In this document: piece after piece, positions 5,821 through 34,100 of the stretch
Layout of the letters: the number at the start of each line of letters is the position of its first letter
How positions within the stretch are numbered: position 1 is the first letter of the stretch
Assembly (NCBI GenBank): GCA_002104945.1
Contig: MCFH01000021.1
Span: 620,001-684,000 of the forward strand
DNA: 64,000 nucleotides
DNA from: Piromyces finnis finn
Taxonomy: Eukaryota; Fungi; Neocallimastigomycota
Direction: 5' to 3'
Translations under genes and position numbers: made by a program
The notes under the pieces: model-generated
The model's input: only the letters and a program-made list of their open reading frames with translations
The model's database searches: none
What the model was told of the DNA's origin: nothing

Positions 5821-6542
5821 TTAAAAAACATTTTATTCATCGAATTTAAGTATTTGATGAATAAGTTGAATGTTTGATACTCAGGTAAGTTTGTATAGTA
5901 TTTAATTAGAAGAGTAATACATTTTGTTGCTGTATTTTTTTCTTTTATTCATGTATTCATGTAGTACTACTCTTCTCTTGTAAGAATCTAATGTAGTCAA
6001 CTTTAGCATTTGCATTGTATTTTTATATTCATGTAGCTATTGTTGTATTGTTTCTTGTAAGAGACTGATTCACTCTACATCATGTAAAAATACTATTCAC
6101 AAGCTTTCTGGTGTCGACATTCTTGATTCAAATTTTTACAAATTTAAATATTTAATGAAAAGTAAAGTCAAACAATTTTAGTGTCAAAAAGCGAATCGAA
6201 TTTACTAACAACAAACCAAAACTAGAATTTTTAAAGAAAATTTACAACTAGAATTCAAAAAAAAAAAAAAGAAACTTTAAACAAAGCATCGTAACAATTT
6301 TTGTACTATCCAGTACTTTTAAGAAGAGAGAGAGAGACAGATTTTTTTCCATATACGTTATATTTGTAATTTTTATTAGTATTTATTTTATATTCAATAT
6401 TTTTTAATTAGAATTAATTATCATGTCAGTCCTTTATATTAAAGATTAGAATTATATCAGACGTGGTACCCGGTCTTTTGGTATCCCCTTAGATGATATT
6501 CGCTCCTTCTTTATCCGTGGTATTCGATCATGGTCAGTAAAT

Positions 6543-9500: not shown

Positions 9501-10976
9501 GCAGGACAACCCATTCCAACTACTGACTGCTACACTTATCTTGGTGTTCCATTTGATAAGAATTTGTCCCTTAAACCAGTAATTAAAGTTCTTAATAACA
9601 AGGTTTTGAAAGAACTTTTCTCAGTCAGTAAATTCTTAAGAAATCCTAATATTCCTATTCCTTTCAAAAAACTAGTACTTAACTCTCAAGTGATTAGCAG
9701 AGTTTCATACTTTGCACCATTACTTGGATCCAACAAAGCTAGGTCTAGGATTGCTCAGAAGCATGTTAACAAAGGAATACGATGGGTTGCCGGAGTTCAT
9801 AAAGCCGTATCGTTTATATCTTTATACTCTATCTCAAAAGATTTGAATATTCCTCCATTGTCAGCCAAATGTGCGTTAGCTCAGGTTAGATGTTTTAACA
9901 AATGGAAAAACTCAAATTGTATTATCTCACACCTTGTCAATTACATTCCTAAATTTAGAAAATACACGTGGTGCAAATCAAGTAGGACACTTGAAAAAAA
10001 ACTAAAGAAGCATGGAGATGTTAAAGCAGTTAAAAACTTTTATTGGAAAGATCTCAAAGGGAATTCAATCAAAGCGCAATATTATGATGATAATAAATTT
10101 ATTGAAACTAAAGATTTTATTAAATTATGTTATGAGTACCCAGAGTTTGCCTATGGCTTCTACTGGCTATTGAAAGCAAGAAGCGGATATAAGTTGGATG
10201 CTAGAGTTGCCAAAGCTGCTAAATTTGTTGATCCAGTTTGTCCTAACTACTGTCCATGTTGCAAGTGTGGAGATCAAAGTATTAAACATTGGTTATTAGA
10301 TTGTCCAACATTTAGAGATATCCGTATTAAACATTATGATTCCATAGTCCAGCTATTAAATTTTTTCAGTCAACGTAATTCCAATAGTCCTATCAATAAT
10401 AATGAAATTGATAATGTCAGTAGAGATAGCAATAACAGTAATAGTAATAGTAACAATAATAATAATAACAATAGTAATAATAACAATAGTAATAATAACA
10501 ATAGTAGTAATAGTAATAATAGAAATAGTAATAATAACAATAGTAGTAATAGAAATAATAATATTAATAATGATAGCAATAGTGAAGATAATAATTCTAA
10601 TTTAGATAGTAATTTAGTTAATGATAGTAATAGTTCTAATAATCCGGTGAATATTAATGTGTATGATTATTCTAGTGTGTGCAGTAAAATATTTAAATTC
10701 CTTCTTGGGGGAAGAAGTTTTAACAATATTAATTACAATTCAAGGGAATGGAAAGAACTTTGTAAGCGTCAGATTCAATCTGGTACTAATGAAGGAGCAC
10801 CATTCTTGACGGTAACCGCGGAACTTCTAACCAAAATCATGCCTTTTGCTATTGGCCAGCAATGGTCAATGTTCAAAAGGTTTGAAGCAACATCCAAGAG
10901 CGTCAATGCTGAAGAAACAGTAAGACAGGCCAGGAGGGCCAGCGCAACCAATGGAGATCATAATTTTGTTCCATGA
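6543..10976 (+). CDS. LINE polyprotein, copy A: APE endonuclease, reverse transcriptase, CCHC knuckle; true start ATG 6423 is followed by TAG at codon 9
   Basis: APE motifs SWNTNG, FQET, NVYMP, GDFN, IDH, SDH. RT motifs GPDGIP, YRGISL, QFGFR, FLDLRKAYDSV, GVRQGCPLSP, FADD, YTYLG. CCHC motif CPCCKCGDQSIKHWLLDC. GAT TAG at 6444-6449 versus GAT AAG in copy C. Confidence 0.93.
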   Translation: MLWEKLEVILEDKFNSVISVKYFQTFNDHFFLVKVHGSSKDCIKILHMLKKKLSVTSISFSARSRRNHKYTFSTLKRKILVSNKHQHSIQQSFQQSVQQSHQQSDLQQDLQQDLQQVSHHENIPDLQQTQFQSQHSTINSNSSINSDNSSIVDSSSVSQPSSNSSTYSSDASSINNDDFNNNNNSNDSSSSNKPDNFSFCLSWNTNGWNHEKRDSISYFTAIFKPLFLCFQETGNGSGSNTDYPCRVTLRNYRHFFKKADESVPGMRGLYLGFHNSCQASLENFSGKYIISIYTFSLWNRFKCSIGNVYMPHSHHNIYVDHAKLEVRLWLQTHSSHPSILVGDFNMSKVKLSNWLSTNGLGDWEILPLRGSTISWTRGDQSSDIDHALINSKMKDLIHSGSFINNFYPVSDHKPLLINGKIIPMEDFSNDFNVPKKILKWNRLKCIEEKESILSHNKFQILSAKFNDPNVSTDELSKEFTSTAFSIADELSITSANNVIKSSFHISQQIFNLQKIKMKLYKRFKKERIYDIDEFIKRIKIYRKLIDYIHKRCNEFRKQEYLHWIKTGCEYMKSHNPKKAWKWIKKTAKIGKDSFFIAQPIKNKNGELVVATEEQLDVWHDHFENLASDPSGVSLDLEHWYEEPTNKRFSLPMLDEWDINQDISIDEVKSAILSTPNYKASGPDGIPIEFYKALIPSSNDSNNATGNNSSGNTTSDNDAHGLNFILKLFNRIWDGDFPNSWNESSIVSIPKKGDLTDCDNYRGISLINNGIKLISKIVTTRISEYGLKNNFIRPEQFGFRKKEESISLFISIQEICRRRQLDNKETYLAFLDLRKAYDSVPIGNILHKLDCLGIRGKSLQFIKNLYLTSKANVKLDGQFSKSFDVKKGVRQGCPLSPILFNLFINDIFKECEDLGVSLGDTRCCGGLFADDIVICAPTRGCLKKMLRRVNEWALYNEMEFGIQKCSTMVIRPESIENQNKRDPTFYLAGQPIPTTDCYTYLGVPFDKNLSLKPVIKVLNNKVLKELFSVSKFLRNPNIPIPFKKLVLNSQVISRVSYFAPLLGSNKARSRIAQKHVNKGIRWVAGVHKAVSFISLYSISKDLNIPPLSAKCALAQVRCFNKWKNSNCIISHLVNYIPKFRKYTWCKSSRTLEKKLKKHGDVKAVKNFYWKDLKGNSIKAQYYDDNKFIETKDFIKLCYEYPEFAYGFYWLLKARSGYKLDARVAKAAKFVDPVCPNYCPCCKCGDQSIKHWLLDCPTFRDIRIKHYDSIVQLLNFFSQRNSNSPINNNEIDNVSRDSNNSNSNSNNNNNNNSNNNNSNNNNSSNSNNRNSNNNNSSNRNNNINNDSNSEDNNSNLDSNLVNDSNSSNNPVNINVYDYSSVCSKIFKFLLGGRSFNNINYNSREWKELCKRQIQSGTNEGAPFLTVTAELLTKIMPFAIGQQWSMFKRFEATSKSVNAEETVRQARRASATNGDHNFVP

Positions 10977-11210
10977 CAAAATTTTGATCTTTGGCTCGGT
11001 GTCCCATTGGAAGTCAAATACAATTATTATACTTTAGTATGATAGTGGCTTTCTTACTTTAATTAAAATTACTAGAATACATTATACCCAATTTTTATTC
11101 ATTTGTGTTTATTTAAACATATTTTTTTTATTTTTATTTATTTTTAATTTTTTATTACATGTATTATAATTTTAATTAAATTAATAATAAAGTTTAAAAT
11201 ATTTGATGCC

Positions 11211-11252
<42 letters not shown>

Positions 11253-11284
11253 ATTGAAGAAACAATAAGACAGGCCAGGAGGGT

Positions 11285-13807
11285 ATCCCTCTTGGGAACG
11301 TGCCTTCATTTATTTAATAAATGTAGTTTCTCAAGGGGGTCTACTCATGCTCATGGTACTGAGAGAGTAGAAAGAATTAAATCCAAGCATTGCGCAATGG
11401 ATGCTTGGTGCCCTCTTAGGAACGTGCCTTCATTTATTTATTAATGGAGTTTATCAAGGGGGTCTACTCATGCTCATGGTACTGAGAGTATCTGGGATGG
11501 AGACTTTCCCAACTCATGGAATGAATCCAGTATTGTTTCTATTCCTAAGAAGGGAGATTTGACAGATTGTGATAACTATCGAGGTATATCACTTATCAAT
11601 AATGGTATTAAGTTGATTTCCAAAATTGTCACCACTAGAATCTCAGAATATGGTTTAAAGAATAATTTCATTAGACCTGAACAATTTGGTTTTCGAAAAA
11701 AGGAAGAAAGTATCAGTCTTTTCATTTAAATCCAAGAAATATGCCGTAGACGTCAATTAGATAATAAAGAGACATATTTGGCCTTTTTAGATCTCAGGAA
11801 AGCATACGATTCAGTCCCAATCGGTAATATTATCCATAAATTAGATTGTTTAGGAATCCGAGGTAAGAGTTTACAATTCATCAAAAATTTATATTTAACA
11901 TCTAAGGCTAATGTCAAATTAGATGGACAATTCTCGAAATCTTTTGATGTGAAGAAAGGAGTCCGTCAAGGATGCCCTCTTTCTCCTATTCTCTTTAATC
12001 TCTTTATTAATGATATATTTAGAGAGTGCGAAGATCTTGGAGTCAGTTTAGGTGACACTCGATGCTGTGGTGGACTTTTTGCAGATGATATAGTTATTTG
12101 TGCTCCAACAAGAGGATGCTTAAAAAAGATGCTAAGAAGAGTTAATGAATGGGCCTTGTATAATGAAATGGAATTTGGTATCCAGAAATGTTCAACGATG
12201 GTGATTCGTCCTGAATCAATAGAAAATCAGATCAAGAGAGATCCAACATTTTACTTAGCAGGACAACCCATTCCAACTACTGATTGTTATACTTATCTTG
12301 GTGTTCCATTTGATAAGAATTTGTCCCTTAAACCAGTAATTAAAGTTCTTAATAACAAGGTTTTGAAAGGACTTTTTTCAGTCAGTAAATTCTTAAGAAA
12401 TCCTAATATTCCTATTCCCTTCAAAAAGCTAGTACTTAACTCACAAGTGATTAGCAGAGTTTCATACTTTGCACCATTACTTGGATCCAACAAAGCTAGG
12501 TCTAGGATTGCTCAGAAGCATGTTAACAAAGGAATACGATGGGTTGCCGGAGTTCATAAAGCTGTATCGTTTATATCTTTATACTCTATCTCAAAAGATT
12601 TGAATATTCCTCCATTGTCAGCCAAATGTGCATTAGCTCAGGTTAGATGTTTTAACAAATGGAAAAACTCAAATTGTATTATCTCACACCTTGTCAATTA
12701 CATTCCTAAATTTAGAAAATACACGTGGTGCAAATCAAGTAGGACACTTGATAAAAAATTAAAGAAACATGGAGATGTTAAAGCAGTTAAAAACTTTTAT
12801 TGGAAAGATCTCAAAGGGAATTCAATCAAAGCGCAATATTATGATGATAATAAGTTTATTGAAACTAAAGATTTTATTAAATTATGTTATGAGTACCCAG
12901 AGTTTGCCTATGGCTTCTACTGGCTATTGAAAGCAAGAAGCGGATACAAGTTGGATGCTAGAGTTGCCAAAGCTGCTAAATTTGTTGATCCAGTTTGTCC
13001 TAACTACTGTCCATGTTGCAAGTGTGGAGATCAAAGTATTAAACATTGGTTATTAGATTGTCCAACATTTAGAGATATCCGTATTAAACATTATATAGTA
13101 ATTGTAATAATATTAATAATATTAATAATAACAATAGTAATAATAACAATAGTAGTAATAGAAATAATAATATTAGTAATGATAGCAATAGTGAAGATAA
13201 TAATTCTAATTTAGTTAATAATAGTAATAGTTCTAATAATCCGGTGAATATTAATGTGTATGATTATTCTAGTGTGTGCAATAAGATATTTAAATTCCTT
13301 CTTGGGGGAAGAAGTTTTAACAACATCAATTACAATTCAAGGGAATGGAAAGAGCTTTGCAAGTGACAGATTCAATCGGGCACTAACGAAGGAACTCCAT
13401 TCTTGACGGTAACAACGGAACTTCTAACCAAAATCATGCCTTTTGCTATTGGCCAGCAATGGTCAATGTTCATAAGGTTTGAAACAACATCCAAGAGTGT
13501 CAATGCTGAAGAAACAGTAAGACAGGCCAGGAGGGCCAGCGCAACCAATGGAGATCATAATTTTGTCCCATGATAAAATTTTGATCTTTGGCTCGGTGTC
13601 CCATTGGAAGTCAAATACAATTATTATACTTTAGTATGATAGTGGCTTTCTTACTTTAATTAAAATTACTAGAATACATTATACCCAATTTTTATTCATT
13701 TGTGTTTATTTAAACATATTTTTTTTATTTTTATTTATTTTTAATTTTTTATTACATGTATTATAATTTTAATTAAATTAATAATAAAGTTTAAAATATT
13801 TGATGCC

Positions 13808-13857
<50 letters not shown>
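11285..13857 (+). mobile_element. LINE family 1 copy B: intact 5' end, about 3-kb internal deletion, nonsense and frameshift lesions
   Basis: Starts ATCCCTCTTGGG. 5' monomers join RT sequence at about 11488-11490. TCA>TAA near 11727. A47 tail at 13811-13857. TSD AGGCCAGGAGGGT at 11272-11284 and 13857-13869. Confidence 0.92.
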
Positions 13858-13860
<3 letters not shown>

Positions 13861-14140
13861 CAGGAGGGTCAGCGCAATCAATGGAGATCATAATTTTGTT
13901 CCATGACAAAATTTTGATCTTTGGCTCGGTGTCCCATTGGAAGTCAAATACAATTATTATACTTTAGTATGATAGTGGCTTTCTTACTTTAATTAAAATT
14001 ACTAGAATACATTATACCCAATTTTTATTCATTTGTGTTTATTTAAACATATTTTTTTTATTTTTATTTATTTTTAATTTTTTATTACATGTATTATAAT
14101 TATAATTAAATTAATAATAAAGTTTAAAATATTTGATGCC

Positions 14141-14175
<35 letters not shown>
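13858..14175 (+). mobile_element. Short 318-bp LINE 3'-end unit (B') with A32 tail, tandem with 14176-14447
   Basis: ORF end, 3' UTR and poly(A) 14144-14175, followed again by GGCCAGGAGGGT at 14176. Confidence 0.88.
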
Positions 14176-14177
<2 letters not shown>

Positions 14178-14447
14178 CAGGAGGGTCAGCGCAATCAATG
14201 GAGATCATAATTTTGTTCCATGACAAAATTTTGATCTTTGGCTCGGTGTCCCATTGGAAGTCAAATACAATTATTATACTTTAGTATAATAGTGGCTTTC
14301 TTACTTTAATTAAAATGACTCGAATACATTATACCCAATTTTTATTCATTTGTGTTTATTTTTGATTTTTGATTTTTGATTTTTTATATTACATGTATTA
14401 TAATTTTAATTAAATTAATAATAAAGTTTAATGCCGTTAAAAAAAAA
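14176..14447 (+). mobile_element. Right part (3' end) of the older LINE copy T
   Basis: Older 3' UTR variant (ATGACTCGAATAC, GATTTTT repeats), A9 tail, then the 17-bp TSD. Confidence 0.85.
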
Positions 14448-14553
14448 TGATAGTAATAATATTAATAGTGACAATAGTAATAATAATATTAATATTTAAT
14501 AATTTTAATAATAGTAGTAATATTTACAAGTGATCAGCAGAGTTTCATACTTT

Positions 14554-16391
14554 TTAATATCCTTACAAAGTTATATAAATTAGGTATACGTGGTAAGTGT
14601 TTTGATTTTCTCAATAATCTCTACTCTACCTCAAAAGCTCGTGAACGTTTCTTGGATATGCTTTCTAATGAATTCCCTATCAATCGTGGTGTAAGACAAG
14701 GATATCCTCTTTCTCCTATTCTATTTAATCTCTTCATCAATGATATTTAAATAAATGTGAAAGGCTTGGAGTTAGCTTAGGAAATAAACGTTGCTGTAGT
14801 GGCCTTTTCGCTGATGATATTGTTCTGATTGCTCCTAGCAAGAAGAACCTTCAAAATATGCTCAATCTAGTCCTTGATTGGGCTAATTTAAATGAAATGT
14901 CTTTTGGAATAAATGTGCAACTATTGTTATTAAACCTATCAACTTTAATAGATCCCCTAGTTATGTCGACCCAACATTTTACATCGGTATGTACTCGATT
15001 CCAAAGGTTTCTTGCTATACTTATCTTGGAATCTCATTCGACGAAGATCTCTCTCTGACACCTATTCTGTCTAATATGTACAAAAAAGTTCAGAAATCTT
15101 TATTCTCTTTTAAGAGCTTCCTCACTAACAATTGTGTTCCTATTGGCTTAAAAAATATAGTAATTAATTCCTATATTTTAAGCAAAGTCTCTTATTATGT
15201 TTCTTTACTTGGTTCCAACAAAAATAGAACTAGAAGAGTCCAATCTCTTATCAATATTGCTGTTTTATGGAGTGTCAATAGCTTTCACAATAAAAGTCTT
15301 AATAACAAGATTTTGTTTTTGAACGAAATTCATTTATTAGTCTGTATGATCTTACAAGAGATATGAAGATTCCTTTGCTAAATAATGGAAGTAAAGCCTT
15401 CAGATATACTAACAACAAATTCCTTAATTCAAATCGCCTAATGCCTATCGGTCTCAACAAACCTCACTTAAATTTAGGAATTACCTGGATTATTCGTATT
15501 CGATGCGGTTATGAATACACTACCCGAATTGCTATTGCCAGTAATAGAGTTACTCCTGACTGCCCTTGTGTCTGTTCATGTTACGGATATGACGAACAAT
15601 CTATTTACCATTGGATATTAGAATGTTCTGTATTCTCTGAATACAGAACTTCTTCACTTAGCTTTCTTGACGATCTTTTTACCCTTTTTTACAATAAATA
15701 TAAGAATCAATTCATCACATACTTAATCCCTAAAATGGAAGTAAGAAAAATAATTTATAACTATGTTTTTACGTTCCTTCTTGGTGGAACTTTAGCTTAT
15801 GATGAGCTACAAATCGATAAGGCGGAACAAAGATATTTGAATGAACAGCTTTACAGTTCATCGGGGTCTCATGTTCCATATGTAGAGGGTCTCGCGGCTT
15901 TTTTTACTAAAACAATCCCTATCATCAGTAGCTCTATGAGGCTACTTTTTGATAGGTTTAGTAAGACACCTAACGTAATCAAGAGCGCCGACGTCGTACC
16001 GAAATGGCAAAAGAACATTCTCAGTGTTCCGTACACAGGGTTCAATGTTAGTATTTCTTCGAGTGAAAACATTATGAACTCATGGGAGAGTTTAGTGGAC
16101 ACCACACTATCATACCTGATGTTACTTCTTTTTTTTTTTATTTCATTTAATTTATTAGGTAGGGACCAATCCCACACAGTACAAATTGCAGAGTTCATTG
16201 AATTTTAATGCAACTTAAATAATTATTTTATATTATTTTATATTTATATTTTTATTTATATATATTTTATTATTTTTATTTATTATTTATTATATCAATA
16301 TGTATTATCACCTAATATTATGTAATATCACAAATTAATTAAATAAATAAAAGATGTGTATTCTCTTCCTAGTCTAAAAAAAAAAAAAAAA
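14554..16391 (+). mobile_element. 5'-truncated, frameshifted LINE of a second, divergent family
   Basis: Degenerate RT (KLGIRGKCFDF, GVRQGYPLSPILFNLFINDI, FADDIV, YTYLGISF), CCHC-like CPCVCSCYGYDEQSIYHWILEC, a different 3' UTR and an A16 tail at 16376-16391. Confidence 0.85.
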
Positions 16392-17571
16392 TTTGCACCA
16401 TTACTTGGATTCAACAAATCTAGGCCTAGAATTGCTCAGAAGCATGTTAACAAAGGAATACGGTGGGTTGCCGGAGTTCGCAAAGCTGTATCGTTTATAT
16501 CTCTATACTCCATTTCAAAAGGAAATTCAATCAGCAATATTATGATGATAATAAATTTATTGAAACTAAAGATTTTATTAAATTATGTTATGAGTACCCA
16601 GAGTTTGCCTATGGCTTCTACTGGCTATTGAAAGCAAGAAGCGGATACAAGTTGGATGCTAGAGTTGCAAAAGCTGCTAAATTTGTTGATCCGGTTTGTC
16701 CTAACTACTATCTATGTTGCAAATGTGGTGTTCAAAGTATTAAGCATTGGTTATTAGATTGTCCAACATTTAGAGATATCCGTATTAAACATTACAATTC
16801 CATAGTCCGACTATTAAATTTTATCAGTCAACGTAATTCCAACAGTCCTATCAATAATAACGAAAATGTTAATATAAGGAGAGATAGCAACAATAATAAT
16901 AATAGTAACTATAGTAATGATAGCAATAGTGAAGATAATAATTCTAATTTAGATAGTAATTTAGTTAATAATAGTAATAGTTCTAATAATCCAGTGAATA
17001 TTAATGTGTATGATTATTCTAGTATGTGCAATAAGATATTTAAATTTCTTCTTGGGGGAAAAAGTTTCAACAATACCAATTACAATTCAAGGGAATATGG
17101 AAAGAACTTTGCAAGTGTCAGATTCAATCTGGTACTAATGAAGTAACACCATTCTTGACGGTAACCGCGGAACTTCTAACCAAAATCATGCCTTTTGCTA
17201 TTGGCCAGCAATGGTCAATGTTCAAAAGGTTTGAAGCAACATCCAAGAGCGTCATTGCTGAAGAAACAGTAAGACAGGCCAGGAGGGTCAGCGCAACCAA
17301 TGGTGATCATAATTTTGTTCCATGACAAAATTTTGATCTTTGGCTCGGTGTCCCATTGGAAGTCAAATACAATAATTATACTTTAGTATAATTGTGGCTT
17401 TCATACTTTAATTAAAATGACTCGAATACATTATACCCAATTTTCATTCATTTGTGCTTATTTGAACATATTTTTTTTATTTTTATTTTTAATTTTTTTA
17501 TATAATATGTATTATAGTCTTAATTAAATTAATAATATAGTTTAATAATATTTGATGCCGTTAAAAAAAAA
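16392..17571 (+). mobile_element. Degenerate family-1 LINE 3' portion (copy E); its first 27 bp lie at 14527-14553, split off by the family-2 insertion
   Basis: CAAGTGATCAGCAGAGTTTCATACTTT (14527-14553) continues as TTTGCACCATTAC (16392), as in copy A near 9684-9724. Internal deletion near 16520, CCHC region, 3' UTR and A9 tail. Confidence 0.85.
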
Positions 17572-17619
17572 TCACATTTTTTTTTACTTTTGCATAATAG
17601 TAGCTTTCTTACTTTAATT

Positions 17620-18220
17620 ATCCCCTTGAAAGTGTGTCTTCATTTATTTAATAAATGAAGTTTCTCAAGGGGCTCTGCTCATGCTCATGTTACTGAGCGA
17701 GTAGAAATAAATTCTAAACTTGTTAGTATTTATTTTATATTTAATTTATTTTTAATTAGAATTAATTATCATGTCAGTCCTGTCCTTTATATTAAAGACA
17801 AGAATTATATTAGACGTGGTACCCGCTCTTATAATATTCCCTTGGATAATATTAGCTCCTTCTTTATTCGTGGTATTCGATCATGGTCAGTTAGTAAGCT
17901 ATTCTGAAGGATATATTTATTTGGTTATTAGTGTTAAATATTTTATGAATTTCAATGATCACTTTTTCTTAATCATGATTCATGATTCAAAGAAAGACTG
18001 GAATAAAATCTTACATATCTTAAGTAAGAAATTTTCTATTACTTCAATTTTCTTTCTTTAGCTTGTAGTAAAAGGAATCATAAATACACTTTTTCCTCAT
18101 TCAAACGTAAATTTTTAGTTTCTAATAAACATCAACAATCAGTTAAACTACCTCATCAATATTCATATCACCAATCTAATCAAATTCAACTCCAACAAGA
18201 TCCTCAACAAGATTTGGAAA
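17620..18220 (+). mobile_element. Diverged family-1 LINE 5' fragment (copy D): one monomer, shortened UTR, frameshifted ORF start
   Basis: ATCCCCTTGAAAG...GCTCATGTTACTGAGCGAGTAGA monomer, then TTAATTAGAATTAATTATCATGTCAGTCC and degenerate N-terminal and Gln-rich coding sequence. Confidence 0.85.
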
Positions 18221-19080
18221 CAACAAATTTCTCTTTTATACTAATCATTTAGATAAATGCTTACAAAATGGAATATTTTAAGGTAATTTTTGTTTTACTT
18301 AAAAAACTATTACTATTATTAACATTACTTGTAATTGAAGATGGAGAGGTAGTATCTAAATTTCAAGAAATAGGGTTTTATTGTAGATTCAACATTTATT
18401 TGGTTCTCCCATTTATATTCTTCGTTTTTATAAACCCTTTATTTTTGGTTATTTTTATCCACACTTTAATAATAAATGAATAATTTTTATTAAATGGATC
18501 ATCGTCACTAACCATTTAATAGTATAATAATAATAATTATAAAATGAATAATTTCTAAAAAAATTGACAAACTAAAAAAAATACTTGTTTTTCCTATCTT
18601 TAGTTTTATTAATATTTTGTTGTTTATTATTTTTAAGATAGTAATTTTATCAGAATAGAATCCTATATAAATATTTAATGGAATGCCAATTTTATTACTA
18701 ATTCTTAGTTTAAGCATAGGTAACGAATAAATTATACTATTTTATTATATATTATTCTTATTATTATTATTAAATAACTACTTCGCTTTTTTTTTCTTTA
18801 TTATAGATTGATTTCTTAGAATTAACTGTAAATGATCCCTAACATAAAATATATATTAAAATTACATTCAATAAATAGGCTTAAATTAATAATTATATCT
18901 TTTTCTTATATTATCAAACGAATATATTCATTAAATTTGAAGATAAAATCAATTGAAAATAATTTATCCAATTCATCATCTAAAAACGTAAATCTGAATA
19001 ATTAGTGATGTAGAGTATCATACTACAGTCCGTTATTTGAATTAATTAAATTAAACCTAGAATTACTCAGTAGCAAAAAA

Positions 19081-19560
19081 TAATACAACTTGAATTTTTC
19101 CCATTTGTCGAAACATCTAACCCGAACTATTAATACATTTTGATAATAATAATGAAATATTCAAATACTTCGATATTGAGTGAAAAGACATGAATGAAAT
19201 GATTTTGTATATAACCTGCAATCTACCATACTCCATTACTGTGTATTGAAAATATATACATAATGTAAATTCAGTAAGAATTCTAAATTAATAAATTAAA
19301 GAAACTGGAAAATAATAACAAAACTCAAAAACTTTTATTGAATAGATATCAGAGTGTAATATTATAAAAACAATATAAAGATAATAAAAATCGAAGAAAT
19401 TAAAGATTTATTAAATTACGTTGTATGTCCCTAGGATTATTATACGGTAGGTATTGAAAGCAAAAAGTAGATAATTAGATTAGTGCTAGGATTGTATAAG
19501 CTGCTAAATTAGCTTAGTTTATCCGAATTACTGCCCATGATACAAGAATTCGATATTGAT
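19081..19560. pseudogene. Ancient LINE relic, with an inverted part (about 19081-19250, minus) and a direct part (about 19331-19560, plus)
   Basis: The minus strand resembles copy A 9775-9925 (GGTTAGATGTTTCGACAAATGGGAAAAATTCAAGTTGTATTA). The plus strand resembles copy A 10035-10260 (GAAATTAAAGATTTATTAAATT, GGTATTGAAAGCAAAAAG, AAGCTGCTAAATT). Confidence 0.6.
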
Positions 19561-24233: not shown

Positions 24234-26195
24234 ATGAAATTTAGAACTCTTTCAATATTATCTTTAGCTGCTTCATTAGTTGCTGGTCAAAACTTTTGTT
24301 CAAGTGCTAATCACTCTGGACAAAGTGTTAAAGTTACCTCAAATAAGGTAGGTTCAATTGGAGGAATTGGTTATGAATTATGGGCTGATAGTGGTAACAA
24401 CAGTGCTACTTTCTATTCTGATGGTTCATTCTCTTGTTCCTTCCAAAATGCTAAGGATTATTTATGTCGTTCTGGTCTTTCCTTCGATAGTACTAAAACT
24501 CATGATCAAATTGGTCACATGTATGCTGATTTCAAACTTGTTAAGCAAAACATTAGAAATGTTGACTATTCCTATGTTGGTATTTACGGTTGGAGTAGAA
24601 ACCCACTTGTAGAATTCTACGTCGTTGATAACTGGCTCAGTCAATACCGTCCAGGTGATTGGGTTGGTAACAAGAAGCATGGTGATTTCACCATTGATGG
24701 TGCTAAATATACTGTTTATGAAAACACTCGTTACGGTCCATCTATTGATGGTAACACTCAATTCAAGCAATTCTTCAGTATTCGTCAACAACCACGTGAA
24801 TGTGGTACTATTGATATTACTGCTCACTTCCAACAATGGGAAAAGCTTGGAATGAAATTAGGTAAGATGCACGAAGCCAAGGTTTTAGGTGAAGCTGGTA
24901 GTAACGGTTCTGGTACTAGTGGTACTGCTGATTTCACTTACGCTAAGGTTTACATTGGTAGTGGCAACGGTAACCAACAAAACGCTTCAACTAAGACTGT
25001 TGCCCGTACTACTACTAAGACTATTAAGACTACTGTTGCCAGCAAGACTCTTCCATCCACTGGCAAGACTCTTCCATCCACTGGTAAGACTCTTCCATCC
25101 ACTGGTAAGACTCTTCCATCCACTGGTAAGACTCTTCCATCCACTGGCAAGACTCTTCCATCCACTGGCAAGACTCTTCCATCCACTGGTAAGACTCTTC
25201 CATCCACTGGCAAGACTCTTCCATCCACTGGTAAGACTCTCCCATCCACTGGTAAGACTCTTCCATCCACTGGTAAGACTCTTCCATCCACTGGTAAGAC
25301 TCTTCCATCCACTGGTAAGACTCTTCCATCCACTGGTAAGACTCTTCCATCCACTGGTAAGACTCTCCCATCCACTGGTAAGACTCTTCCATCCACTGGC
25401 AAGACTCTTCCATCCACTGGCAAGACTCTTCCATCCACTGGCAAGACTCTTCCATCCACTGGCAAGACTCTCCCATCCACTGGCAAGACTCTCCCATCCA
25501 CTGGCAAGACTCTTCCATCCACTGGCAAGACTCTTCCATCCACTGGTAAGACTCTTCCATCCACTGGTAAGACTCTTCCATCCACTGGTAAGACTCTTCC
25601 ATCCACTGGCAAGACTCTTCCATCCACTGGCAAGACTCTTCCATCCACTGGTAAGACTCTTCCATCCACTGGTAAGACTCTTCCATCCACTGGTAAGACT
25701 ATCCCATCCACTGGTAAGACTATCCCATCCACTGGTAAGACTATCCCATCCACTGGTAAGACTATCCCATCCACTGGTAAGACTATCCCATCCACTGGTA
25801 AGACTATCCCATCCACTGGTAAGACTATCCCATCCACTGGTAAGACTATCCCATCCACTGGTAAGACTCTCCCATCCACTGGTAAGACTATCCCATCCAC
25901 TGGTAAGACTATCCCATCCACTACTAAAACTATCCCATCCACTACTAAAACTATTCAATCTTCTTGTAAACCAGTTACCGTTACTGTGGTCCAAACTGTT
26001 ACTGTTACTGTTAACTCTCAACCAAGTAACAACAACTGGAACAATGGCGGTAACAATTGGAACAATGGTGGTAACAATGGTAACTGTGCTGCTAAATGGG
26101 GACAATGTGGTGGTAACGGTTACAATGGACCAACTTGTTGTCAACAAGGATCATCTTGCCAATTCGTTAATGAATGGTACTCACAATGTCTTTAA
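24234..26195 (+). CDS. Secreted GH11 endo-1,4-beta-xylanase with long Ser/Thr/Pro repeat linker and C-terminal CBM1; intronless
   Basis: Signal peptide; GH11 catalytic motifs [11 protein letters not shown] and AKVLGEAG; closely resembles the Neocallimastix XynA-type catalytic domain (recalled); CBM1 [36 protein letters not shown]. Confidence 0.96.
25056..25958 (+). repeat. Coding 21-bp minisatellite: 41 x STGKT(L/I)P plus 2 x STTKTI(P/Q)
   Basis: 25056-25916 is 861 nt, or 41 units of TCCACTGG(T/C)AAGACT(C/A)T(T/C)CCA. The count agrees with the 653-aa ORF length. Confidence 0.95.
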
Positions 26196-26699
26196 ATGAA
26201 ATAATCATTTAAAGGATAATACAAAAAGGATTCCGAATACGTTTCATAAAAGAATGAAATAAGATGGTATTCATTTTTTTATAGAAGGTTAGACAAGAAA
26301 ATATGAGTTGAAAAAAAAAATTATATAATATAGTAAATAGCTAAAAATAATCAAATAAAATATGAAAAACTTGCATTACGATATTCATAAAAATTACTAA
26401 TTAAATAAATTATAAAATATTTAATAAAATTAAAAAATAATAAAATAAATTATTGATATTAATTTTTATTTATTTGAAGTGAGCTATATAGTTATAATGT
26501 TAGTGTAAGTAATTTGGATAAGAATTATGAAGTTATGACATAATAGAAAGAGCTGATTGAAGTTATTAAAGTATATTAAAAAAAAGGTTTTATTAAATTA
26601 CTGGTAAAGTGGAAAATTGTTGTGAGGATAAATTATAATACTGAATTAAATAATAATAATTATTATATTCGTGAATTTTCGTAAAATAAGGAAATTAAG

Positions 26700-27053
26700 A
26701 AGGTTTTGAAAGGACTTTTTTCAATCAGCAAATTCTTAAGAAATTCTAATATTCTTATTCCTTTCAAAAAACTTAATAATTTTAATAATATTGTTAATAA
26801 TGGTAATAATAGCAATAGTGAAGATAATAATTCTAATTTAGTTAATAATAGTAATAGTTCTAATAATCCGGTGAATATTAATGTGTATGATTATTCTAGT
26901 GTGTGCAATAAGATATTTAAATTCCTTCTTGGGGGAAGAAGTTTTAACAACATCAATTACAATTCAAGGGAATGGAAAGAGCTTTGCAAGTGACAGATTC
27001 AATCGGGCACTAACGAAGGAACTCCATTCTTGACGGTAACAACGGAACTTCTA
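26700..27053 (+). mobile_element. Left part of an older defective family-1 LINE (T2), interrupted by copy C
   Basis: Internally deleted ORF remnant (KGLFSISKFLRN...REWKELCK then TGA). It continues at 32760. Confidence 0.85.
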
Positions 27054-30000
27054 TCCCTCTTGGGAACGTGCCTTCATTTATTTAATAAATGTAGTTTCTC
27101 AAGGGGGTCTACTCATGCTCATGGTACTGAGAGAGTAGAAAGAATTAAATCCAAGTATTGCGCAATGGATGCTTGGTGCCCTCTTAGGAATGTGCCTTCA
27201 TTTATTTAATAAATGTAATTTCTCAAGGGGGTCTACTCATGCTCATGGTACTGAGAGAGTAGAAAGAATTAAATCCAAGCATTGCGCAATGGATGCTTGG
27301 TTAGTCTTCAAGGGAAAATTATTAGGACTAAGCTCATGGTACTGAGCGATTAAAAAACATTTTATTCATCAAATTTAAGTATTTGATGAATAAGTGAATG
27401 TTTGATTTTTCAGGTAAGTTTGTATAGTATTTAATTAGAAGAGTAATACATTTTGTTGCTGTATTTTTTCTTTTATTCATGTATTCATGTAGTACTACTC
27501 TTCTCTTGTAAGAATCCAATGTAGTCAACTTTAGCATTTGCATTGTACTTTTATATTCATGTAGCTATTGTTGTATTGTTTCTTGTAAGAGACTGATTCA
27601 CTCTACATCATGTAAAAATACTATTCACAAGCTTTCTGGTGTCGACATTCTTGATTCAAATTTTTTACCAATTTAAATATTTAATGAAAAGTAAAGTCAA
27701 ACAAGTTTAGTGTCAAAAAGCGAATCGAATTTACTAACAACAAACCAAAACTAGAATTTTTAAAGAAAATTTACAACTAGAATTCAAAAAAAAAAAAAAG
27801 AAACTTTAAACAAAGCATCGTAACAATTTTTGTACTATCCAGTACTTTTAAGAAGAGAGAGAGAGACAGATTTTTTTCCATATACGTTATATTTGTAATT
27901 TTTATTAGTATTTATTTTATATTCAATATTTTTTAATTAGAATTTATTATCATGTCAGTCCTTTATATTAAAGATAAGAATTATATCAGACGTGGTACCC
28001 GGTCTTATGGTATCCCCTTAGATGATATTCGCTCCTTCTTTATCCGTGGTATTCGATCATGGTCAGTAAATATGCTATGGGAAAAACTCGAGGTTATTCT
28101 AGAAGATAAACTTAATTCAGTTATTAGTGTTAAATATTTTCAAACTTTCAATGATCACTTTTTCTTAGTCAAGGTTCATGGTTCATCAAAAGATTGTATT
28201 AAAATCTTACACATGTTAAAGAAGAAACTTTCAGTTACCTCAATTTCCTTTTCAGCTCGTAGTAGAAGGAATCACAAATACACTTTTTCCACTCTCAAAC
28301 GTAAAATTTTAGTTTCTAATAAACATCAACATTCTATTCAACAATCATTTCAACAATCAGTTCAACAATCAGTTCAACAATCTCATCAACAATCCGATCT
28401 TCAACAAGATCTTCAACAGGATCTTCAACAAGTTTCCCATCATGAAAATATTCCAGATCTACAGCAAACACAATTTCAATCTCAACATTCAACAATTAAT
28501 TCTAATAGTTCTATCAACTCTGATAACAGTTCAATAGTTGATAGTTCTTCAGTTTCACAGCCATCTAGTAATAGTTCTACTTATTCCTCTGATGCATCAT
28601 CCATTAATAACGATGACTTTAATAATAATAATAATAGCAACGATTCTTCCTCATCCAACAAGCCTGATAACTTTTCTTTTTGTCTTAGTTGGAACACCAA
28701 TGGGTGGAATCATGAAAAGAGAGATAGTATTAGCTATTTCACAGCTATTTTCAAACCATTATTCTTATGTTTCCAAGAAACTGGTAATGGTTCTGGATCG
28801 AATACAGATTATCCTTGTCGTGTTACTTTGCGAAACTATAGACACTTTTTCAAGAAAGCTGACGAATCAGTTCCGGGAATGAGAGGTTTATATTTAGGTT
28901 TTCACAATTCGTGTCAAGCCTCACTTGAAAACTTCTCTGGAAAGTATATTATTTCTATTTATACTTTTAGTCTCTGGAATAGATTCAAATGCTCGATTGG
29001 AAATGTTCATATGCCTCATAGTCATCACAACATCTATGTTGATCATGCAAAGTTAGAAGTTCGCTTGTGGTTACAAACTCATTCATCCCATCCATCGATT
29101 CTTGTTGGTGATTTTAATATGTCTAAAGTAAAATTATCCAACTGGTTATCAACTAATGGATTAGGAGATTGGGAAATTCTTCCGCTTAGAGGGTCTACTA
29201 TCTCTTGGACTCGAGGTGATCAATCTTCCGACATTGACCATGCTCTTATCAATTCGAAGATGAAAGATCTTATTCACTCAGGATCATTTATAAATAATTT
29301 TTATCCTGTATCAGACCATAAGCCACTTCTTATTAATGGTAAAATTATTCCTATGGAAGATTTTTCTAATGACTTTAATGTTCCTAAGAAAATTCTGAAA
29401 TGGAATAGATTAAAATGTATTGAGGAAAAGGAATCTATTCTCAGTCATAATAAATTCCAAATACTTTCAGCAAAATTCAACGATCCTAATGTTTCTACAG
29501 ATGAACTTTCCAAAGAGTTTACTTCAACTGCTTTTTCAATTGCAGACGAGCTCAGTATTACCTCAGCAAATAATGTTATAAAGTCTTCATTTCATATTTC
29601 ACAACAAATTTTTAATCTCCAAAAAATCAAAATGAAGTTGTATAAGAGATTTAAAAAAGAAAGAATTTATGATATAGATGAATTTATTAAAAGAATTAAA
29701 ATCTACCGTAAGCTCATTGATTACATCCACAAAAGATGTAATGAATTTAGGAAACAAGAATATCTTCATTGGATTAAAACAGGATGTGAGTATATGAAGA
29801 GTCATAATCCTAAGAAGGCCTGGAAATGGATCAAGAAAACTGCAAAAATTGGAAAAGATTCTTTCTTTATTGCTCAACCAATTAAAAACAAAAATGGAGA
29901 ATTAGTTGTTGCTACGGAAGAACAACTAGATGTGTGGCATGATCATTTCGAAAAGCTTGCATCAGATCCAAGTGGTGTAAGTCTTGATTTGGAGCATTGG

Positions 30001-32712
30001 TATGAAGAACCAACGAATAAACGTTTTTCACTCCCTATGCTTGATGAATGGGATATCAACCAAGATATTAGTATTGATGAAGTCAAGTCAGCTATCCTCT
30101 CTACTCCGAATTATAAAGCATCAGGTCCGGATGGTATTCCAATTGAATTTTACAAAGCATTAATTTCATCAAGTAATGATTCTAATAATGCTACAGATAA
30201 TAATTCTTCCGGTAATACCACTTCAGATAATGATGCTTATGGTTTAAATTTTATTCTTAAATTATTCAACCGTATTTGGGATGGAGACTTCCCCAACTCA
30301 TGGAATGAATCCAGTATTGTTTCTATTCCTAAGAAGGGAGATTTGACAGATTGTGATAACTATCGAGGTATATCACTTATCAATAATGGTATTAAGTTGA
30401 TTTCCAAAATTGTCACCACTAGAATCTCAGAATATGGTCTAAAGAATAATTTCATTAGACCTGAACAATTTGGTTTTCGAAAAAAGGAAGAAAGTATCAG
30501 TCTTTTCATTTCAATCCAAGAAATATGCCGTAGACGTCAATTAGATAATAAAGAGACATATTTGGCCTTTTTAGATCTCAGGAAAGCATACGATTCAGTC
30601 CCAATCGGTAATATTCTCCATAAATTAGATTGTTTAGGAATCCGAGGTAAGAGTTTACAATTCATCAAAAATTTATATTTAACATCTAAGGCTAATGTCA
30701 AATTAGATGGACAATTCTCGAAATCTTTTGATGTGAAGAAAGGAGTCCGTCAAGGTTGCCCTCTTTCTCCTATTCTCTTTAATCTCTTTATTAATGATAT
30801 ATTTAAAGAGTGTGAAGATCTCGGAGTCAGTTTAGGTGACACTCGATGCTGTGGTGGACTTTTTGCAGATGATATAGTTATTTGTGCTCCAACAAGAGGA
30901 TGCTTAAAAAAGATGCTTAGAAGAGTTAATGAATGGGCCTTGTATAATGAAATGGAATTTGGTATCCAGAAGTGTTCAACGATGGTGATTCGTCCTGAAT
31001 CAATAGAAAATCAGAACAAGAGAGATCCAACATTTTACTTAGCAGGACAACCCATTCCAACTACTGATTGTTATACTTATCTTGGTGTTCCATTTGATAA
31101 GAATCTGTCCCTTAAACCAGTTATTAAAGCTCTTAATAACAAGGTTTTGAAAGGGCTTTTTTCAGTCAGTAAATTCTTAAGAAATCCTAATATTCCTATT
31201 CCCTTCAAAAAGCTAGTACTTAACTCACAAGTGATTAGCAGAGTTTCATACTTTGCACCATTACTTGGATCCAACAAAGCCAGGTCTAGAATTGCACAGA
31301 AGCATGTTAACAAAGGAATACGATGGGTTGCCGGAGTTCATAAAGCTGTATCGTTTATATCTTTATACTCTATTTCAAAAGATTTGAATATTCCTCCATT
31401 GTCAGCCAAATGTGCATTAGCTCAGGTTAGATGTTTTAACAAATGGAAAAACTCAAATTGTATTATCTCATACCTTGTCAATTACATTCCTAAATTTAGA
31501 AAATACACGTGGTGCAAATCAAGTAGGACACTTGATAAAAAACTAAAGAAACATGGAGATGTTAAAGCAGTTAAAAACTTTTATTGGAAAGATCTCAAAG
31601 GGAATTCAATCAAAGCGCAATATTATGATGATAATAAGTTTATTGATACTAAAGATTTTATTAAATTATGTTATGAGTACCCAGAGTTTGCCTATGGCTT
31701 CTACTGGCTATTGAAAGCAAGAAGCGGATACAAGTTGGATGCTAGAGTTGCCAAAGCTGCCAAATTTGTTGATCCAGTTTGTCCTAACTACTGTCCATGT
31801 TGCAAGTGTGGAGATCAAAGTATTAAACATTGGTTATTAGATTGTCCAACATTTAGAGATATCCGTATTAAACATTATGATTCCATAGTCCAGCTATTAA
31901 ATTTTTTCAGTCAACGTAATTCCAATAGTCCTATCAATAATAATGAAATTGATAATATCAGTAGAGATAGTAATAATATTAATAGTAATAGTAACAATAG
32001 TAATAATAACAATAGTAATAGTAACAATAGTAATAATAACAATAGTAGTAATAGAAATAATAATATTAGTAATGATAGCAATAGTGAAGATAATAATTCT
32101 AATTTAGATAGTAATTTAGTTAATGATAGTAATAGTTCTAATAATCCGGTGAATATTAATGTGTATGATTATTCTAGTGTGTGCAGTAAAATATTTAAAT
32201 TCCTTCTTGGGGGAAGAAGTTTTAACAATATCAATTACAATTCAAGGGAATGGAAAGAACTTTGTAAGCGTCAGATTCAATCTGGTACTAATGAAGGAAC
32301 ACCATTCTTGATGGTAACCGCGGAACTTCTAACCAAAATCATGCCTTTTGCTATTGGCCAGCAATGGTCAATGTTCAAAAGGTTTGAAGCAACATCCAAG
32401 AGCGTCAATGCTGAAGAAACAGTAAGACAGGCCAGGAGGGCCAGCGCAACCAATGGAGATCATAATTTTGTCCCATGATAAAATTTTGATCTTTGGCTCG
32501 GTGTCCCATTGGAAGTCAAATACAATTATTATACTTTAGTATGATAGTGGCTTTCTTACTTTAATTAAAATTACTAGAATACATTATACCCAATTTTTAT
32601 TCATTTGTGTTTATTTAAACATATTTTTTTTATTTTTATTTATTTTTAATTTTTTATTACATGTATTATAATTTTAATTAAATTAATAATAAAGTTTAAA
32701 ATATTTGATGCC

Positions 32713-32759
<47 letters not shown>
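27054..32759 (+). mobile_element. Full-length, apparently intact LINE family 1, copy C
   Basis: Two 124-bp monomers (27055, 27179), intact ORF and A44 tail (32716-32759). TSD CGGAACTTCTA at 27043-27053 and 32760-32770, extendable by A residues. Confidence 0.96.
27952..32478 (+). CDS. LINE polyprotein, 1508 aa: putative N-terminal RRM, Gln/Ser/Asn linker, APE, RT, CCHC, Asn-rich tract
   Basis: Uninterrupted ORF with the same APE, RT and CCHC motifs as copy A. No RNase H recognised. Confidence 0.95.
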   Translation: MSVLYIKDKNYIRRGTRSYGIPLDDIRSFFIRGIRSWSVNMLWEKLEVILEDKLNSVISVKYFQTFNDHFFLVKVHGSSKDCIKILHMLKKKLSVTSISFSARSRRNHKYTFSTLKRKILVSNKHQHSIQQSFQQSVQQSVQQSHQQSDLQQDLQQDLQQVSHHENIPDLQQTQFQSQHSTINSNSSINSDNSSIVDSSSVSQPSSNSSTYSSDASSINNDDFNNNNNSNDSSSSNKPDNFSFCLSWNTNGWNHEKRDSISYFTAIFKPLFLCFQETGNGSGSNTDYPCRVTLRNYRHFFKKADESVPGMRGLYLGFHNSCQASLENFSGKYIISIYTFSLWNRFKCSIGNVHMPHSHHNIYVDHAKLEVRLWLQTHSSHPSILVGDFNMSKVKLSNWLSTNGLGDWEILPLRGSTISWTRGDQSSDIDHALINSKMKDLIHSGSFINNFYPVSDHKPLLINGKIIPMEDFSNDFNVPKKILKWNRLKCIEEKESILSHNKFQILSAKFNDPNVSTDELSKEFTSTAFSIADELSITSANNVIKSSFHISQQIFNLQKIKMKLYKRFKKERIYDIDEFIKRIKIYRKLIDYIHKRCNEFRKQEYLHWIKTGCEYMKSHNPKKAWKWIKKTAKIGKDSFFIAQPIKNKNGELVVATEEQLDVWHDHFEKLASDPSGVSLDLEHWYEEPTNKRFSLPMLDEWDINQDISIDEVKSAILSTPNYKASGPDGIPIEFYKALISSSNDSNNATDNNSSGNTTSDNDAYGLNFILKLFNRIWDGDFPNSWNESSIVSIPKKGDLTDCDNYRGISLINNGIKLISKIVTTRISEYGLKNNFIRPEQFGFRKKEESISLFISIQEICRRRQLDNKETYLAFLDLRKAYDSVPIGNILHKLDCLGIRGKSLQFIKNLYLTSKANVKLDGQFSKSFDVKKGVRQGCPLSPILFNLFINDIFKECEDLGVSLGDTRCCGGLFADDIVICAPTRGCLKKMLRRVNEWALYNEMEFGIQKCSTMVIRPESIENQNKRDPTFYLAGQPIPTTDCYTYLGVPFDKNLSLKPVIKALNNKVLKGLFSVSKFLRNPNIPIPFKKLVLNSQVISRVSYFAPLLGSNKARSRIAQKHVNKGIRWVAGVHKAVSFISLYSISKDLNIPPLSAKCALAQVRCFNKWKNSNCIISYLVNYIPKFRKYTWCKSSRTLDKKLKKHGDVKAVKNFYWKDLKGNSIKAQYYDDNKFIDTKDFIKLCYEYPEFAYGFYWLLKARSGYKLDARVAKAAKFVDPVCPNYCPCCKCGDQSIKHWLLDCPTFRDIRIKHYDSIVQLLNFFSQRNSNSPINNNEIDNISRDSNNINSNSNNSNNNNSNSNNSNNNNSSNRNNNISNDSNSEDNNSNLDSNLVNDSNSSNNPVNINVYDYSSVCSKIFKFLLGGRSFNNINYNSREWKELCKRQIQSGTNEGTPFLMVTAELLTKIMPFAIGQQWSMFKRFEATSKSVNAEETVRQARRASATNGDHNFVP

Positions 32760-32760
<1 letters not shown>

Positions 32761-33133
32761 GGAACTTCTAACCAAAATCATGCCTTTTGCTATTGGCCAG
32801 CAATGGTCAATGTTCAAAAGGTTTGAAACAACATCCAAGAGTGTCAATGCTGAAGAAACAGTAAGACAAGCCAGGAGGGTCAGCGCAATCAATGGAGATC
32901 ATAATTTTGTTCCATGACAAAATTTTGATCTTTGGCTCGGTGTCCCATTGGAAGTCAAATACAATCATTATACTTTAGTATAATAGTGGCTTTCTTACTT
33001 TAATTAAAATGACTCGAATACATTATACCCAATTTTTATTCATTTGTGTTTATTTTTGATTTTTGATTTTTTATATTACATAATTTTAATTAAATTAATA
33101 ATGAAGTTTAAAATATTTGATTAAAAAAAAAAA
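32760..33133 (+). mobile_element. Right part (3' end) of the older copy T2
   Basis: Resumes exactly at the TSD; older 3' UTR variant; A11 at 33123-33133. Confidence 0.88.
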
Positions 33134-33299
33134 CTTTAATATTATACTATTGGAACTTTTTTCATTTAATAAATTACTAAGAAATTCTGGTATTACTATT
33201 CTACTTTTAAAATTAATTATTAATTCATATATGATTAGTAAGATAATATACTTTAATTTTGATAAAATTAAATATATTACTAAAATATTTTAGTAAATG

Positions 33300-34100
33300 A
33301 ATATGATGGATTACAAGTTTTTACAAATGTATTTCATTCATATTTCTATTCTTAATTTTGAAGTGTTTAAAAATTCATCTTCAAATTGTATTATTTCTTA
33401 TCTAGTCAATTATATTCTTTAATTTAAAAAGTATACATAATACAAATTGTGATCTAAATATTAAGTTAAAGAAAAACCGATAAAAGCATCTATTGGATAG
33501 ATCTCAAAGAAAAATCAATCAAAGAATAGTTTTATGATGGTAGTATATTTGAAGAAACTAAAAAATTTTATATATGGCATATACTGTTTATTGAAAGAGA
33601 AAAACCAATATATGTTGTTAAAGTTTTTAAATCCGCTAAATTAGTTGATCCAAATTGTCTAAATTACTTCCTATAATAATTATCAATGTATTAAATAGTA
33701 ATTAATTGGATGTCCCATTTTATTAATATTTGTAATAATAATCATTTTTAAATAGTACTATTAATAATGGTAATGTTAATGATAGTAACAATAACACTAT
33801 TGACAACGACTATAATATTATTTTAATATATTAGTAGAATTTAATTATTAACTAATAAAAATTAACCAGAATATGTGATTTCAATTAAGTATTATGTGAG
33901 AAAACTTACGGCCACATAATATAACCAATGCTTCCCTAAGAAGAAACCTACGCAAAGTTTTTGATACTAATTATAAATTCTTGGAAACATTTATCTTGAA
34001 ATTTTTCAATAACTTGTCATGATGGGCATTCTTATTGATGGTATCATCATCAACCCACTTTTGCCTTAATCCAGAATCCAGGAATGTTATTAGATATAGC
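33300..34100 (+). pseudogene. Highly decayed LINE relic (post-RT region)
   Basis: Patches match family 1: TCAAATTGTATTATTTCTTATCTAGTCAATTA, ATTGGATAGATCTCAAAG, GCTAAATTAGTTGATCCA. The boundaries are approximate. Confidence 0.55.

Follow-up and report, generated by a model that had tools for sequence, protein, structure and literature searches.

Does a retrotransposon that inserts into older copies of itself recognise its own sequence, or does it return to the same kind of place? The question is raised by a 64,000-nucleotide stretch of the genome of the fungus Piromyces finnis (Neocallimastigomycota; contig MCFH01000021.1, positions 620,001 to 684,000; hereafter the window), in which a full-length long interspersed nuclear element (LINE), copy C, interrupts a short, older copy of the same family, T2, behind a GH11 xylanase gene. 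Our analysis indicates that this self-nesting is real and is probably best explained as a by-product of a place-based, gene-polar choice of site; we read the family as one whose sites are chosen, or retained, according to place rather than sequence. A single nest such as C in T2 is an ordinary finding: nested LINEs are already known from Cnl1 and Zepp. What would be new is a family-wide habit of lying behind genes, possibly a safe-haven strategy for a LINE of which we found no description in literature searches.

Position behind genes and within older copies

The genome assembly spans 56.46 Mb in 232 contigs, is very AT-rich and carries genes typical of anaerobic gut fungi, among them those for GH10, GH11 and CBM10 dockerin proteins. 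The DNA sampled from it, ~290 kb, comprised the window, 30 loci at young LINE 5′ ends and 20 stretches at 3′ ends on contig C1. For 28 independent young copies, host open reading frames (ORFs) were sought in the 1.5 kb before the LINE 5′ end. A same-sense host ORF ends 385–1162 bp (median 762) upstream in 22 of these, while an opposite-sense ORF was the only one upstream in none (0/28); the remaining loci had another LINE upstream (4/28) or nothing (2/28). Under the same criteria, non-LINE positions of the window returned a same-sense ORF in 14 % and an opposite-sense ORF in 12 % of cases, against which 22/28 is highly improbable (p=2e-14).

The upstream ORFs are the complete C-termini of unrelated genes, encoding phosphoglycerate kinase (PGK), class-II aldolase, eIF5A, a DEAD-box helicase, aconitase, adenylosuccinate lyase, acetyl-CoA transferase, GH1, GH3, two GH6 proteins, a P-type ATPase, dockerin and chitin-binding proteins and others. 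Piles in the separate 3′-end sample lie likewise behind genes for RPL15 (403 bp), PEPCK (782 bp), a formin (1059 bp) and a CBM10 protein (642 bp), and behind a 1381-aa ORF (451–688 bp). Judging by their names, the genes of this zone appear skewed to kinds that are usually highly expressed.

At two of the 28 loci, a same-strand tRNA gene precedes the LINE 5′ end by 35–76 bp: tRNA-Ser(CGA) (L021:1342–1423) and tRNA-Leu(CAA) (L025:1195–1277). Both loci also carry a protein-coding gene, farther upstream of the tRNA gene. tRNA targeting was rejected as the main rule, as it accounts for these two loci only and no tRNA gene was found in the window. A strand-asymmetric nick motif was also considered as the cause of the polarity and set aside as insufficient; the downstream zone is only mildly A-rich (A 0.44 vs T 0.39; TAAAA:TTTTA 285:204), and base composition therefore cannot explain the polarity.

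The arrangement of copies relative to one another is equally polar. All ten nested events verified by a target-site duplication have the orientation of their host, and neighbouring copies within 6.5 kb lie on the same strand in 43 cases vs 3 on opposite strands. The original prediction of self-targeting thus holds in that the family is strongly tied to its own copies, in the same orientation, and copies do lie in or on older copies in tandem; recognition of self sequence, the other half of the claim, does not follow from where the insertions fall. Nested sites lie 31–357 bp from the 5′ edge of the host copy, whichever segment of the consensus forms that edge (mean relative position in the host 0.15, p=3e-5), and the self pieces immediately upstream of young copies are 56–216 bp long. 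In the pile at C1:1520843, identity to C drops away from the front edge (99.4, 99.3, 97.9, 96.6, 96.3 and 95.5 %). Restricted distance, fixed orientation and indifference to local sequence, i.e. the behaviour of a position-specific LINE, are thus found both behind genes and at the fronts of host copies.

Among the opposite-strand neighbours, two of the three pairs are arranged tail-to-tail, 150–500 bp apart, on short contigs (C20:9519–10042 and C65:1365–1542); these may be palindromic assembly artefacts. The 30-kb LINE array at C1:1520843–1551576 (L045–L050) contains a ~9.2-kb segmental duplication, in which the non-self flank and the pieces 1160–1303 and 3929–5706 occur twice.

We propose a landing zone ~0.4–1.2 kb past the stop codons of protein-coding genes, entered in the orientation of the gene, with an occasional landing just behind a tRNA gene. 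Repeat hits in the same few-hundred-bp zone would then enter the front few hundred bp of the earlier arrival, and copies would come to lie inside one another like 'Russian dolls' or stacked head to tail, all in one orientation, while the older ones are displaced from the gene. The bias would be made at integration, not by survival alone, and its cue would be transcription termination or the end of the transcription unit; we favour both because of the polarity (22 to 0), the gene skew and the difference in offset between RNA polymerase II (Pol II) and tRNA genes. A termination cue would explain the polarity together with the different offsets behind the two kinds of gene. Selection against insertions in 3′ untranslated regions (UTRs) and promoters surely contributes. 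More tentatively, and at a strength that we would not call probable, the LINE particle might be led to DNA past the 3′ ends of active genes (0.4–1.2 kb for Pol II genes, tens of bp for tRNA genes) and prime on the template strand, so that copies point gene-wise.

Copy C, its host copy and the second pile of the window

Pile 2, which consists of T2 and C, and its surroundings are laid out as follows:

24234–26195, plus strand: GH11 xylanase gene with a C-terminal CBM1, with pile 2 behind it (ORF list, Pfam); the stop codon ends at 26195
26696–27053, plus strand: T2 host copy, left part, starting 501 bp past the GH11 stop codon (BLAST against C, sequence)
27041–27053, plus strand: left copy of the C target-site duplication, AACGGAACTTCTA (sequence)
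27054–32759, plus strand: copy C, full-length LINE, at a site 858 bp past the GH11 stop codon (sequence, BLAST, ORF list, Pfam)
32760–32770, plus strand: right copy of the C target-site duplication, CGGAACTTCTA, possibly including the last two A's of the tail (sequence)
32760–33134, plus strand: T2 host copy, right part, corresponding to C coordinates 5268–5662, with its own A11 tail (BLAST, 88.4 % identity)
33381–33667, plus strand: diverged LINE relic, much older and farther from the gene than pile 2 (69 % DNA and 38 % protein identity)

The C-terminus of the GH11 protein is complete, since CBM_1 occupies residues 621–649 of 653 (Pfam: Glyco_hydro_11, 1.6e-40). T2 represents only the last ~730 bp of the element, and its left part consists of two pieces (26696–26773, C coordinates 4084–4161; 26795–27053, C coordinates 5008–5278) separated by an internal deletion. 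The left part is 88.7–89.7 % identical to C by BLAST (88.7 % for the 26795–27053 piece); overall, T2 lies on the same strand as C at 88–89 % identity and is the older copy. The body of C, a ~5.7-kb LINE with an apurinic/apyrimidinic endonuclease-like (APE) domain and a reverse transcriptase (RT), measures 5662 bp, with two 124-bp monomers at its 5′ end (27055–27301), a 3′ UTR of 237 bp and a tail of exactly 44 A (32716–32759).

It had been claimed that C interrupts T2, which resumes after the A44 tail, and sequence and BLAST agree on this, the two copies having the same orientation and the insertion being flanked by a duplication of 11 bp, or 13 bp with two tail A's counted in. The duplication, the tail and the T2 flanks likewise confirm C as an independent, genuine insertion into an older copy. 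The junction of the C tail with CGGAACTTCTA occurs only once in the genome. C is a recent, ordinary target-primed reverse-transcription insertion of a very active L1-like LINE. Under the proposed scheme, T2 would have arrived 501 bp behind the GH11 gene and C later, at 858 bp, by then within T2.

The only long ORF of C (27952–32478, 1508 aa) encodes, in order, an N-terminal ferredoxin/RRM-like domain, a low-complexity linker, an APE endonuclease, an RT and a Cys/His motif. The Pfam hits (Exo_endo_phos, residues 245–456, profile positions 1–225 of 225; RVT_1, residues 792–1047, profile positions 1–204 of 205) place the APE-like domain N-terminal to the RT in one polypeptide, as in APE-type LINEs, and the closest solved relative is human L1 ORF2p (RT region, E=5e-33). 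Residues 1–110 (window 27952–28281) are predicted, at modest confidence (predicted local distance difference test score 66), to adopt a beta-alpha-beta-beta-alpha-beta, ferredoxin/RRM-like fold, and ~130 Q/S/N-rich low-complexity residues separate this domain from the endonuclease. The N-terminal extension of the single ORF may stand in for a separate ORF1. An Atlas search with the N-terminal domain gave noise-level matches only (at most 0.81), and structure matches in the PDB were weak (template modelling score at most 0.57), indicating a generic fold with no pointer to a partner. We considered the domain as a clue to targeting and discarded it, as the single-sequence model offers only a generic ferredoxin/RRM-like fold.

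The family to which C belongs is large and, to judge from its sequences, young. It has 646 exact 3′ ends in the genome, with 618, 512 and 331 copies at positions 5447, 4709 and 991, respectively, and totals ~2.4 Mb (4.3 % of the genome). Sampled copies bear the usual LINE hallmarks, i.e. tails of 9–81 A, variable duplications of 10–17 bp and, in many cases, 5′ truncation. The first 447 bp of C are 100 % identical in all 40 places of the genome that were scored, and an ORF of 1504 aa or more is open in 11 of the 14 near-full-length copies sampled. Many copies thus appear competent, C among them, and its intact 1508-aa ORF bears out the suggestion that it could still transpose.

The number of 124-bp 5′ monomers differs among copies (window 27055–27301, 5526–5772 and 11287–11488; L017, L020, L024, L025, L027 and L029), and partial monomers are often present in front of full-length copies. 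The first base ahead of CCCTCTTGGG is variable (T, A, G or C), as expected for untemplated addition.

The other pile of the window lies behind a transporter gene:

3355–4905, plus strand: MFS transporter gene, with pile 1 (T1, A and B) behind it (Pfam MFS_1, 1.9e-59)
5431–14463, plus strand: pile 1, bounded by the T1 duplication TGATAGTAATAATATT at 5431–5446 and 14448–14463 (BLAST, sequence)
14541–19546, all plus strand: older LINE relics, farther from the MFS gene than pile 1 (protein identity to C 31–79 %)

T1 is a ~380-bp 3′ fragment with its own 16-bp duplication, at a site 541 bp past the MFS stop codon (4905). Inside it lie copy A (5526–11250; duplication ATTATTGAAGAA), 620 bp past the stop codon, and copy B (11286–13857; duplication AGGCCAGGAGGGT), ~640 bp past it; a 318-bp 3′ piece (13858–14174) is present at the site of B. 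Copy A is 97.6 % identical to C and has an N-terminally shorter ORF (1477 aa), while B is old, at ~93 % identity to C, and has an internal deletion that removes positions 205–3218. A and B would likewise have arrived behind the MFS gene, and each pile of the window has older, more diverged relics beyond it, again on the same strand.

In C coordinates, the target sites are 5266–5278 (C), 5354–5365 (A) and 5376–5388 (B). The positions originally given for them in copy A numbering convert correctly to these, and the span of ~120 bp claimed for three young insertions stands. Their youth does not, given the divergence and internal deletion of B and the 97.6 % identity and shortened ORF of A; among the three, only C is very young. 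The C followed by A said to be shared by the targets at the tail junction is mostly a product of assigning A's to the tail or to the duplication. As a conserved feature, 'C|A' was rejected, with other events showing T^A, T^T and G^T.

The element's own sequence as a target, and rival explanations

Insertion sites were compared across the family using the sampled DNA and, for contigs C2–C68, tail-then-LINE junctions placed from the coordinates of exact 24-mer anchors with an accuracy of about ±20 bp. Outside the window, 41 independent junctions were obtained, at positions ~5 to ~5640, i.e. from the 5′ monomers to the 3′ UTR. The idea that a ~120-bp stretch of the element's C-terminal coding region serves as a recognition site for its own integration machinery draws on the three window sites in 5266–5388, on three further events within that stretch elsewhere (5300–5311, 5319 and 5354–5365) and on the recurrence of A's site in at least five contigs. 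We nevertheless consider it very unlikely. Only 3 of the 41 junctions fall in 5269–5388, where 1.2 (2.9 %) would be expected (p=0.12), and a regional hot spot there is accordingly not significant against the copy-number model. The histogram of insertion positions, which would have peaked under self-recognition, is instead spread over the whole element and, in four coarse bins, fits the copy-number profile (chi-square p=0.6). Because T1 and T2 are short 3′ fragments, three window sites can map to the same ~120 bp without recognition, and three uniformly placed sites in these hosts would fall within 120 bp in 13 % of trials.

Nor does the family resemble sequence-specific LINEs of the R2/Tx1 type, in which one target is cut at a fixed bond. 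The duplications of the sampled events are unrelated in sequence, those outside the element being AT-rich and varied, and neither C's nor B's exact site is hit again elsewhere, the junction of B being found nowhere in the genome except in this window. GC-rich patches were also tried as targets and rejected, as the effect is weak (36 % vs 31 % GC, p=0.03) and the non-self duplications are AT-rich. We conclude that no 120-bp region of the element's own sequence is recognised; of the regional, non-strict recognition that had been proposed, the lack of a strict target sequence stands and the preference for the C-terminal stretch is not supported.

Self-homing of the Cnl1/Zepp kind, in which newcomers are drawn to resident copies by the front edge, chromatin or transcripts of these and lie near genes only as a secondary effect, has more in its favour. 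LINE material lies directly upstream of at least 60 % of young full-length copies, two-thirds of the 3′ junctions on contig C1 abut LINE DNA in a genome of which the family makes up only ~4 %, and the 43 to 3 excess of same-strand neighbours is what it would produce. We regard it as unlikely all the same, since at least nine young copies with no upstream LINE remnant lie at the same distance and in the same orientation behind genes, and the place must therefore be defined without a resident LINE. Whichever consensus segment a host consists of, and whatever sequence lies at its 5′ edge, hits fall near that edge. The copies are scattered behind genes over more than 100 contigs and do not form telomeric or centromeric arrays. 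Somewhat less likely still is near-random integration followed by selection, under which only sense insertions beyond the 3′ UTR of a gene would be harmless enough to persist. That no copy lies nearer than 385 bp to a stop codon is as expected with protected 3′ UTRs, and the compact gene neighbourhoods of the genome and the AT-rich, varied non-self duplications are in keeping with it; however, the pattern is already present in the youngest copies (99.4–100 % identical), the orientations stand at 22 to 0, the same loci were hit independently several times within 100–360 bp, the genes are skewed to glycolytic, translation, ribosomal and cellulosome functions, and large AT-rich intergenic tracts are empty.

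Several points weigh against site choice by place behind genes, the reading we prefer. The sample is small, amounting to ~290 kb out of 56 Mb and to 28 + 6 loci, a single 64-kb window supplied the null rate, and the upper bound of the zone is cut by sampling, as the loci reach 1.5 kb upstream. At two of the young copies no ORF is present within 1.5 kb; for one older copy, the same-sense ORFs are all short and low in GC, and even the nearest stops ~2 kb from it. The terms 'highly expressed' and 'termination zone' are drawn from gene names, and purifying selection could contribute to both position and orientation. Moreover, A's junction (a poly(A) tail and then TGCTGAAGAAAC, C coordinates 5354–5365) recurs in at least five other contigs (C1:1538283–1541475, L047–L049; C113:243073; C160:200375; C232:22833; C152:290578), which could reflect a hot spot with independent hits, tandem duplication or read-through that spread a composite copy. 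Likewise, two different hosts carry insertions after position 5036, so that some local sequence or structural preference, or the spread of composite copies, may play a part.

At C1:1538283–1541475, three tandem units of a 948-bp 3′ piece (4744–5691) are each flanked by AATGCTGAAGAA. The insertions after C coordinate 5036 are young full-length copies at L005 (C163) and L023 (C209), placed after the same nucleotide (…AGTGAA) in different older hosts; a third junction, near 5019 on C57, was placed from coordinates.

Comparison with known elements and further loci

Cnl1 of Cryptococcus neoformans/deneoformans is a LINE of the APE type, often truncated at the 5′ end and tailed with poly(A), that forms nested arrays in tandem orientation (PMC9942834; bioRxiv 10.1101/2021.08.11.455996). 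The Piromyces LINE has all of these features in common with it, copies within copies and tandem orientation included. However, Cnl1 arrays are subtelomeric, whereas the Piromyces piles are dispersed behind ordinary genes on many contigs, and the Piromyces LINE is larger (5.7 kb, with one ORF and 124-bp 5′ monomers, vs 3.4–3.5 kb). A relation to the distance and orientation of an upstream gene is not described for Cnl1 arrays in these sources (PMC9942834; bioRxiv 10.1101/2021.08.11.455996). Zepp and Zepp-like L1-clade LINEs of Chlorella, Coccomyxa and Chlamydomonas form clusters by nested insertion, with arrays rich in 3′ ends (PMC8226300; PMC3446292). Each chromosome has a single Zepp cluster, placed at a putative centromere or telomere, whereas the Piromyces LINE forms hundreds of small piles, each behind a gene, and its arrays are not dominated by 3′ ends because about half of the copies reach position 991. 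Confinement to subtelomeres or to one centromere-like cluster was not found, the copies being present on well over 100 contigs, beside ordinary genes.

A parallel in habit is offered by TRE5 and TRE3 of Dictyostelium discoideum, which insert in a position- and orientation-specific manner at a set distance from transcription units, a 'safe haven' in a gene-dense, AT-rich genome (PMC3159450). The Piromyces LINE resembles them where it lies 35–76 bp behind tRNA genes, i.e. at the 2/28 loci described above. TRE elements target Pol III genes through TFIIIB/TFIIIC. In contrast, most Piromyces sites lie 0.4–1.2 kb behind Pol II protein-coding genes. With human LINE-1 (ORF2p), the Piromyces LINE shares APE and RT domains, a poly(A) tail, variable duplications (11–17 bp) and 5′ truncation, the hallmarks of target-primed reverse transcription; unlike human LINE-1, it has no separate ORF1 but a ~240-aa N-terminal extension, no TTTT/A-type target is evident, and its choice of site is strongly positional and polar. 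Literature searches brought up no LINE reported to target the 3′ flanks of Pol II genes, which is weak evidence of absence.

Nesting may not require self-recognition; in this sample, a positional, transcription-polar preference for sites behind genes yields the same pattern. Should the preference act at integration, the ends of Pol II genes would guide this LINE to safe sites, a strategy that would complement those of the Dictyostelium TRE elements, which are directed to Pol III genes, and of yeast Ty elements. It would also give an entry point to the question of how LINE particles sense chromatin or transcription state. The result further suggests re-examining the 'self-targeting' of other LINEs as a possible by-product of place-based targeting.

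Two further loci carry LINE fragments ahead of a full-length copy. At C1:276989–284212 (L034), the copy is preceded by LINE pieces 4682–4745 and 5385–5513 and followed by non-LINE DNA, an arrangement that fits a composite better than a simple nest; such a composite could stem from template switching or from a transcript started upstream (5′ transduction). At L010:1460–1500, a 71-bp LINE fragment is separated from a full-length copy by 33 bp that hold TTAGGG-like motifs (GTTAGGGT…GGTTAGGTTAG).

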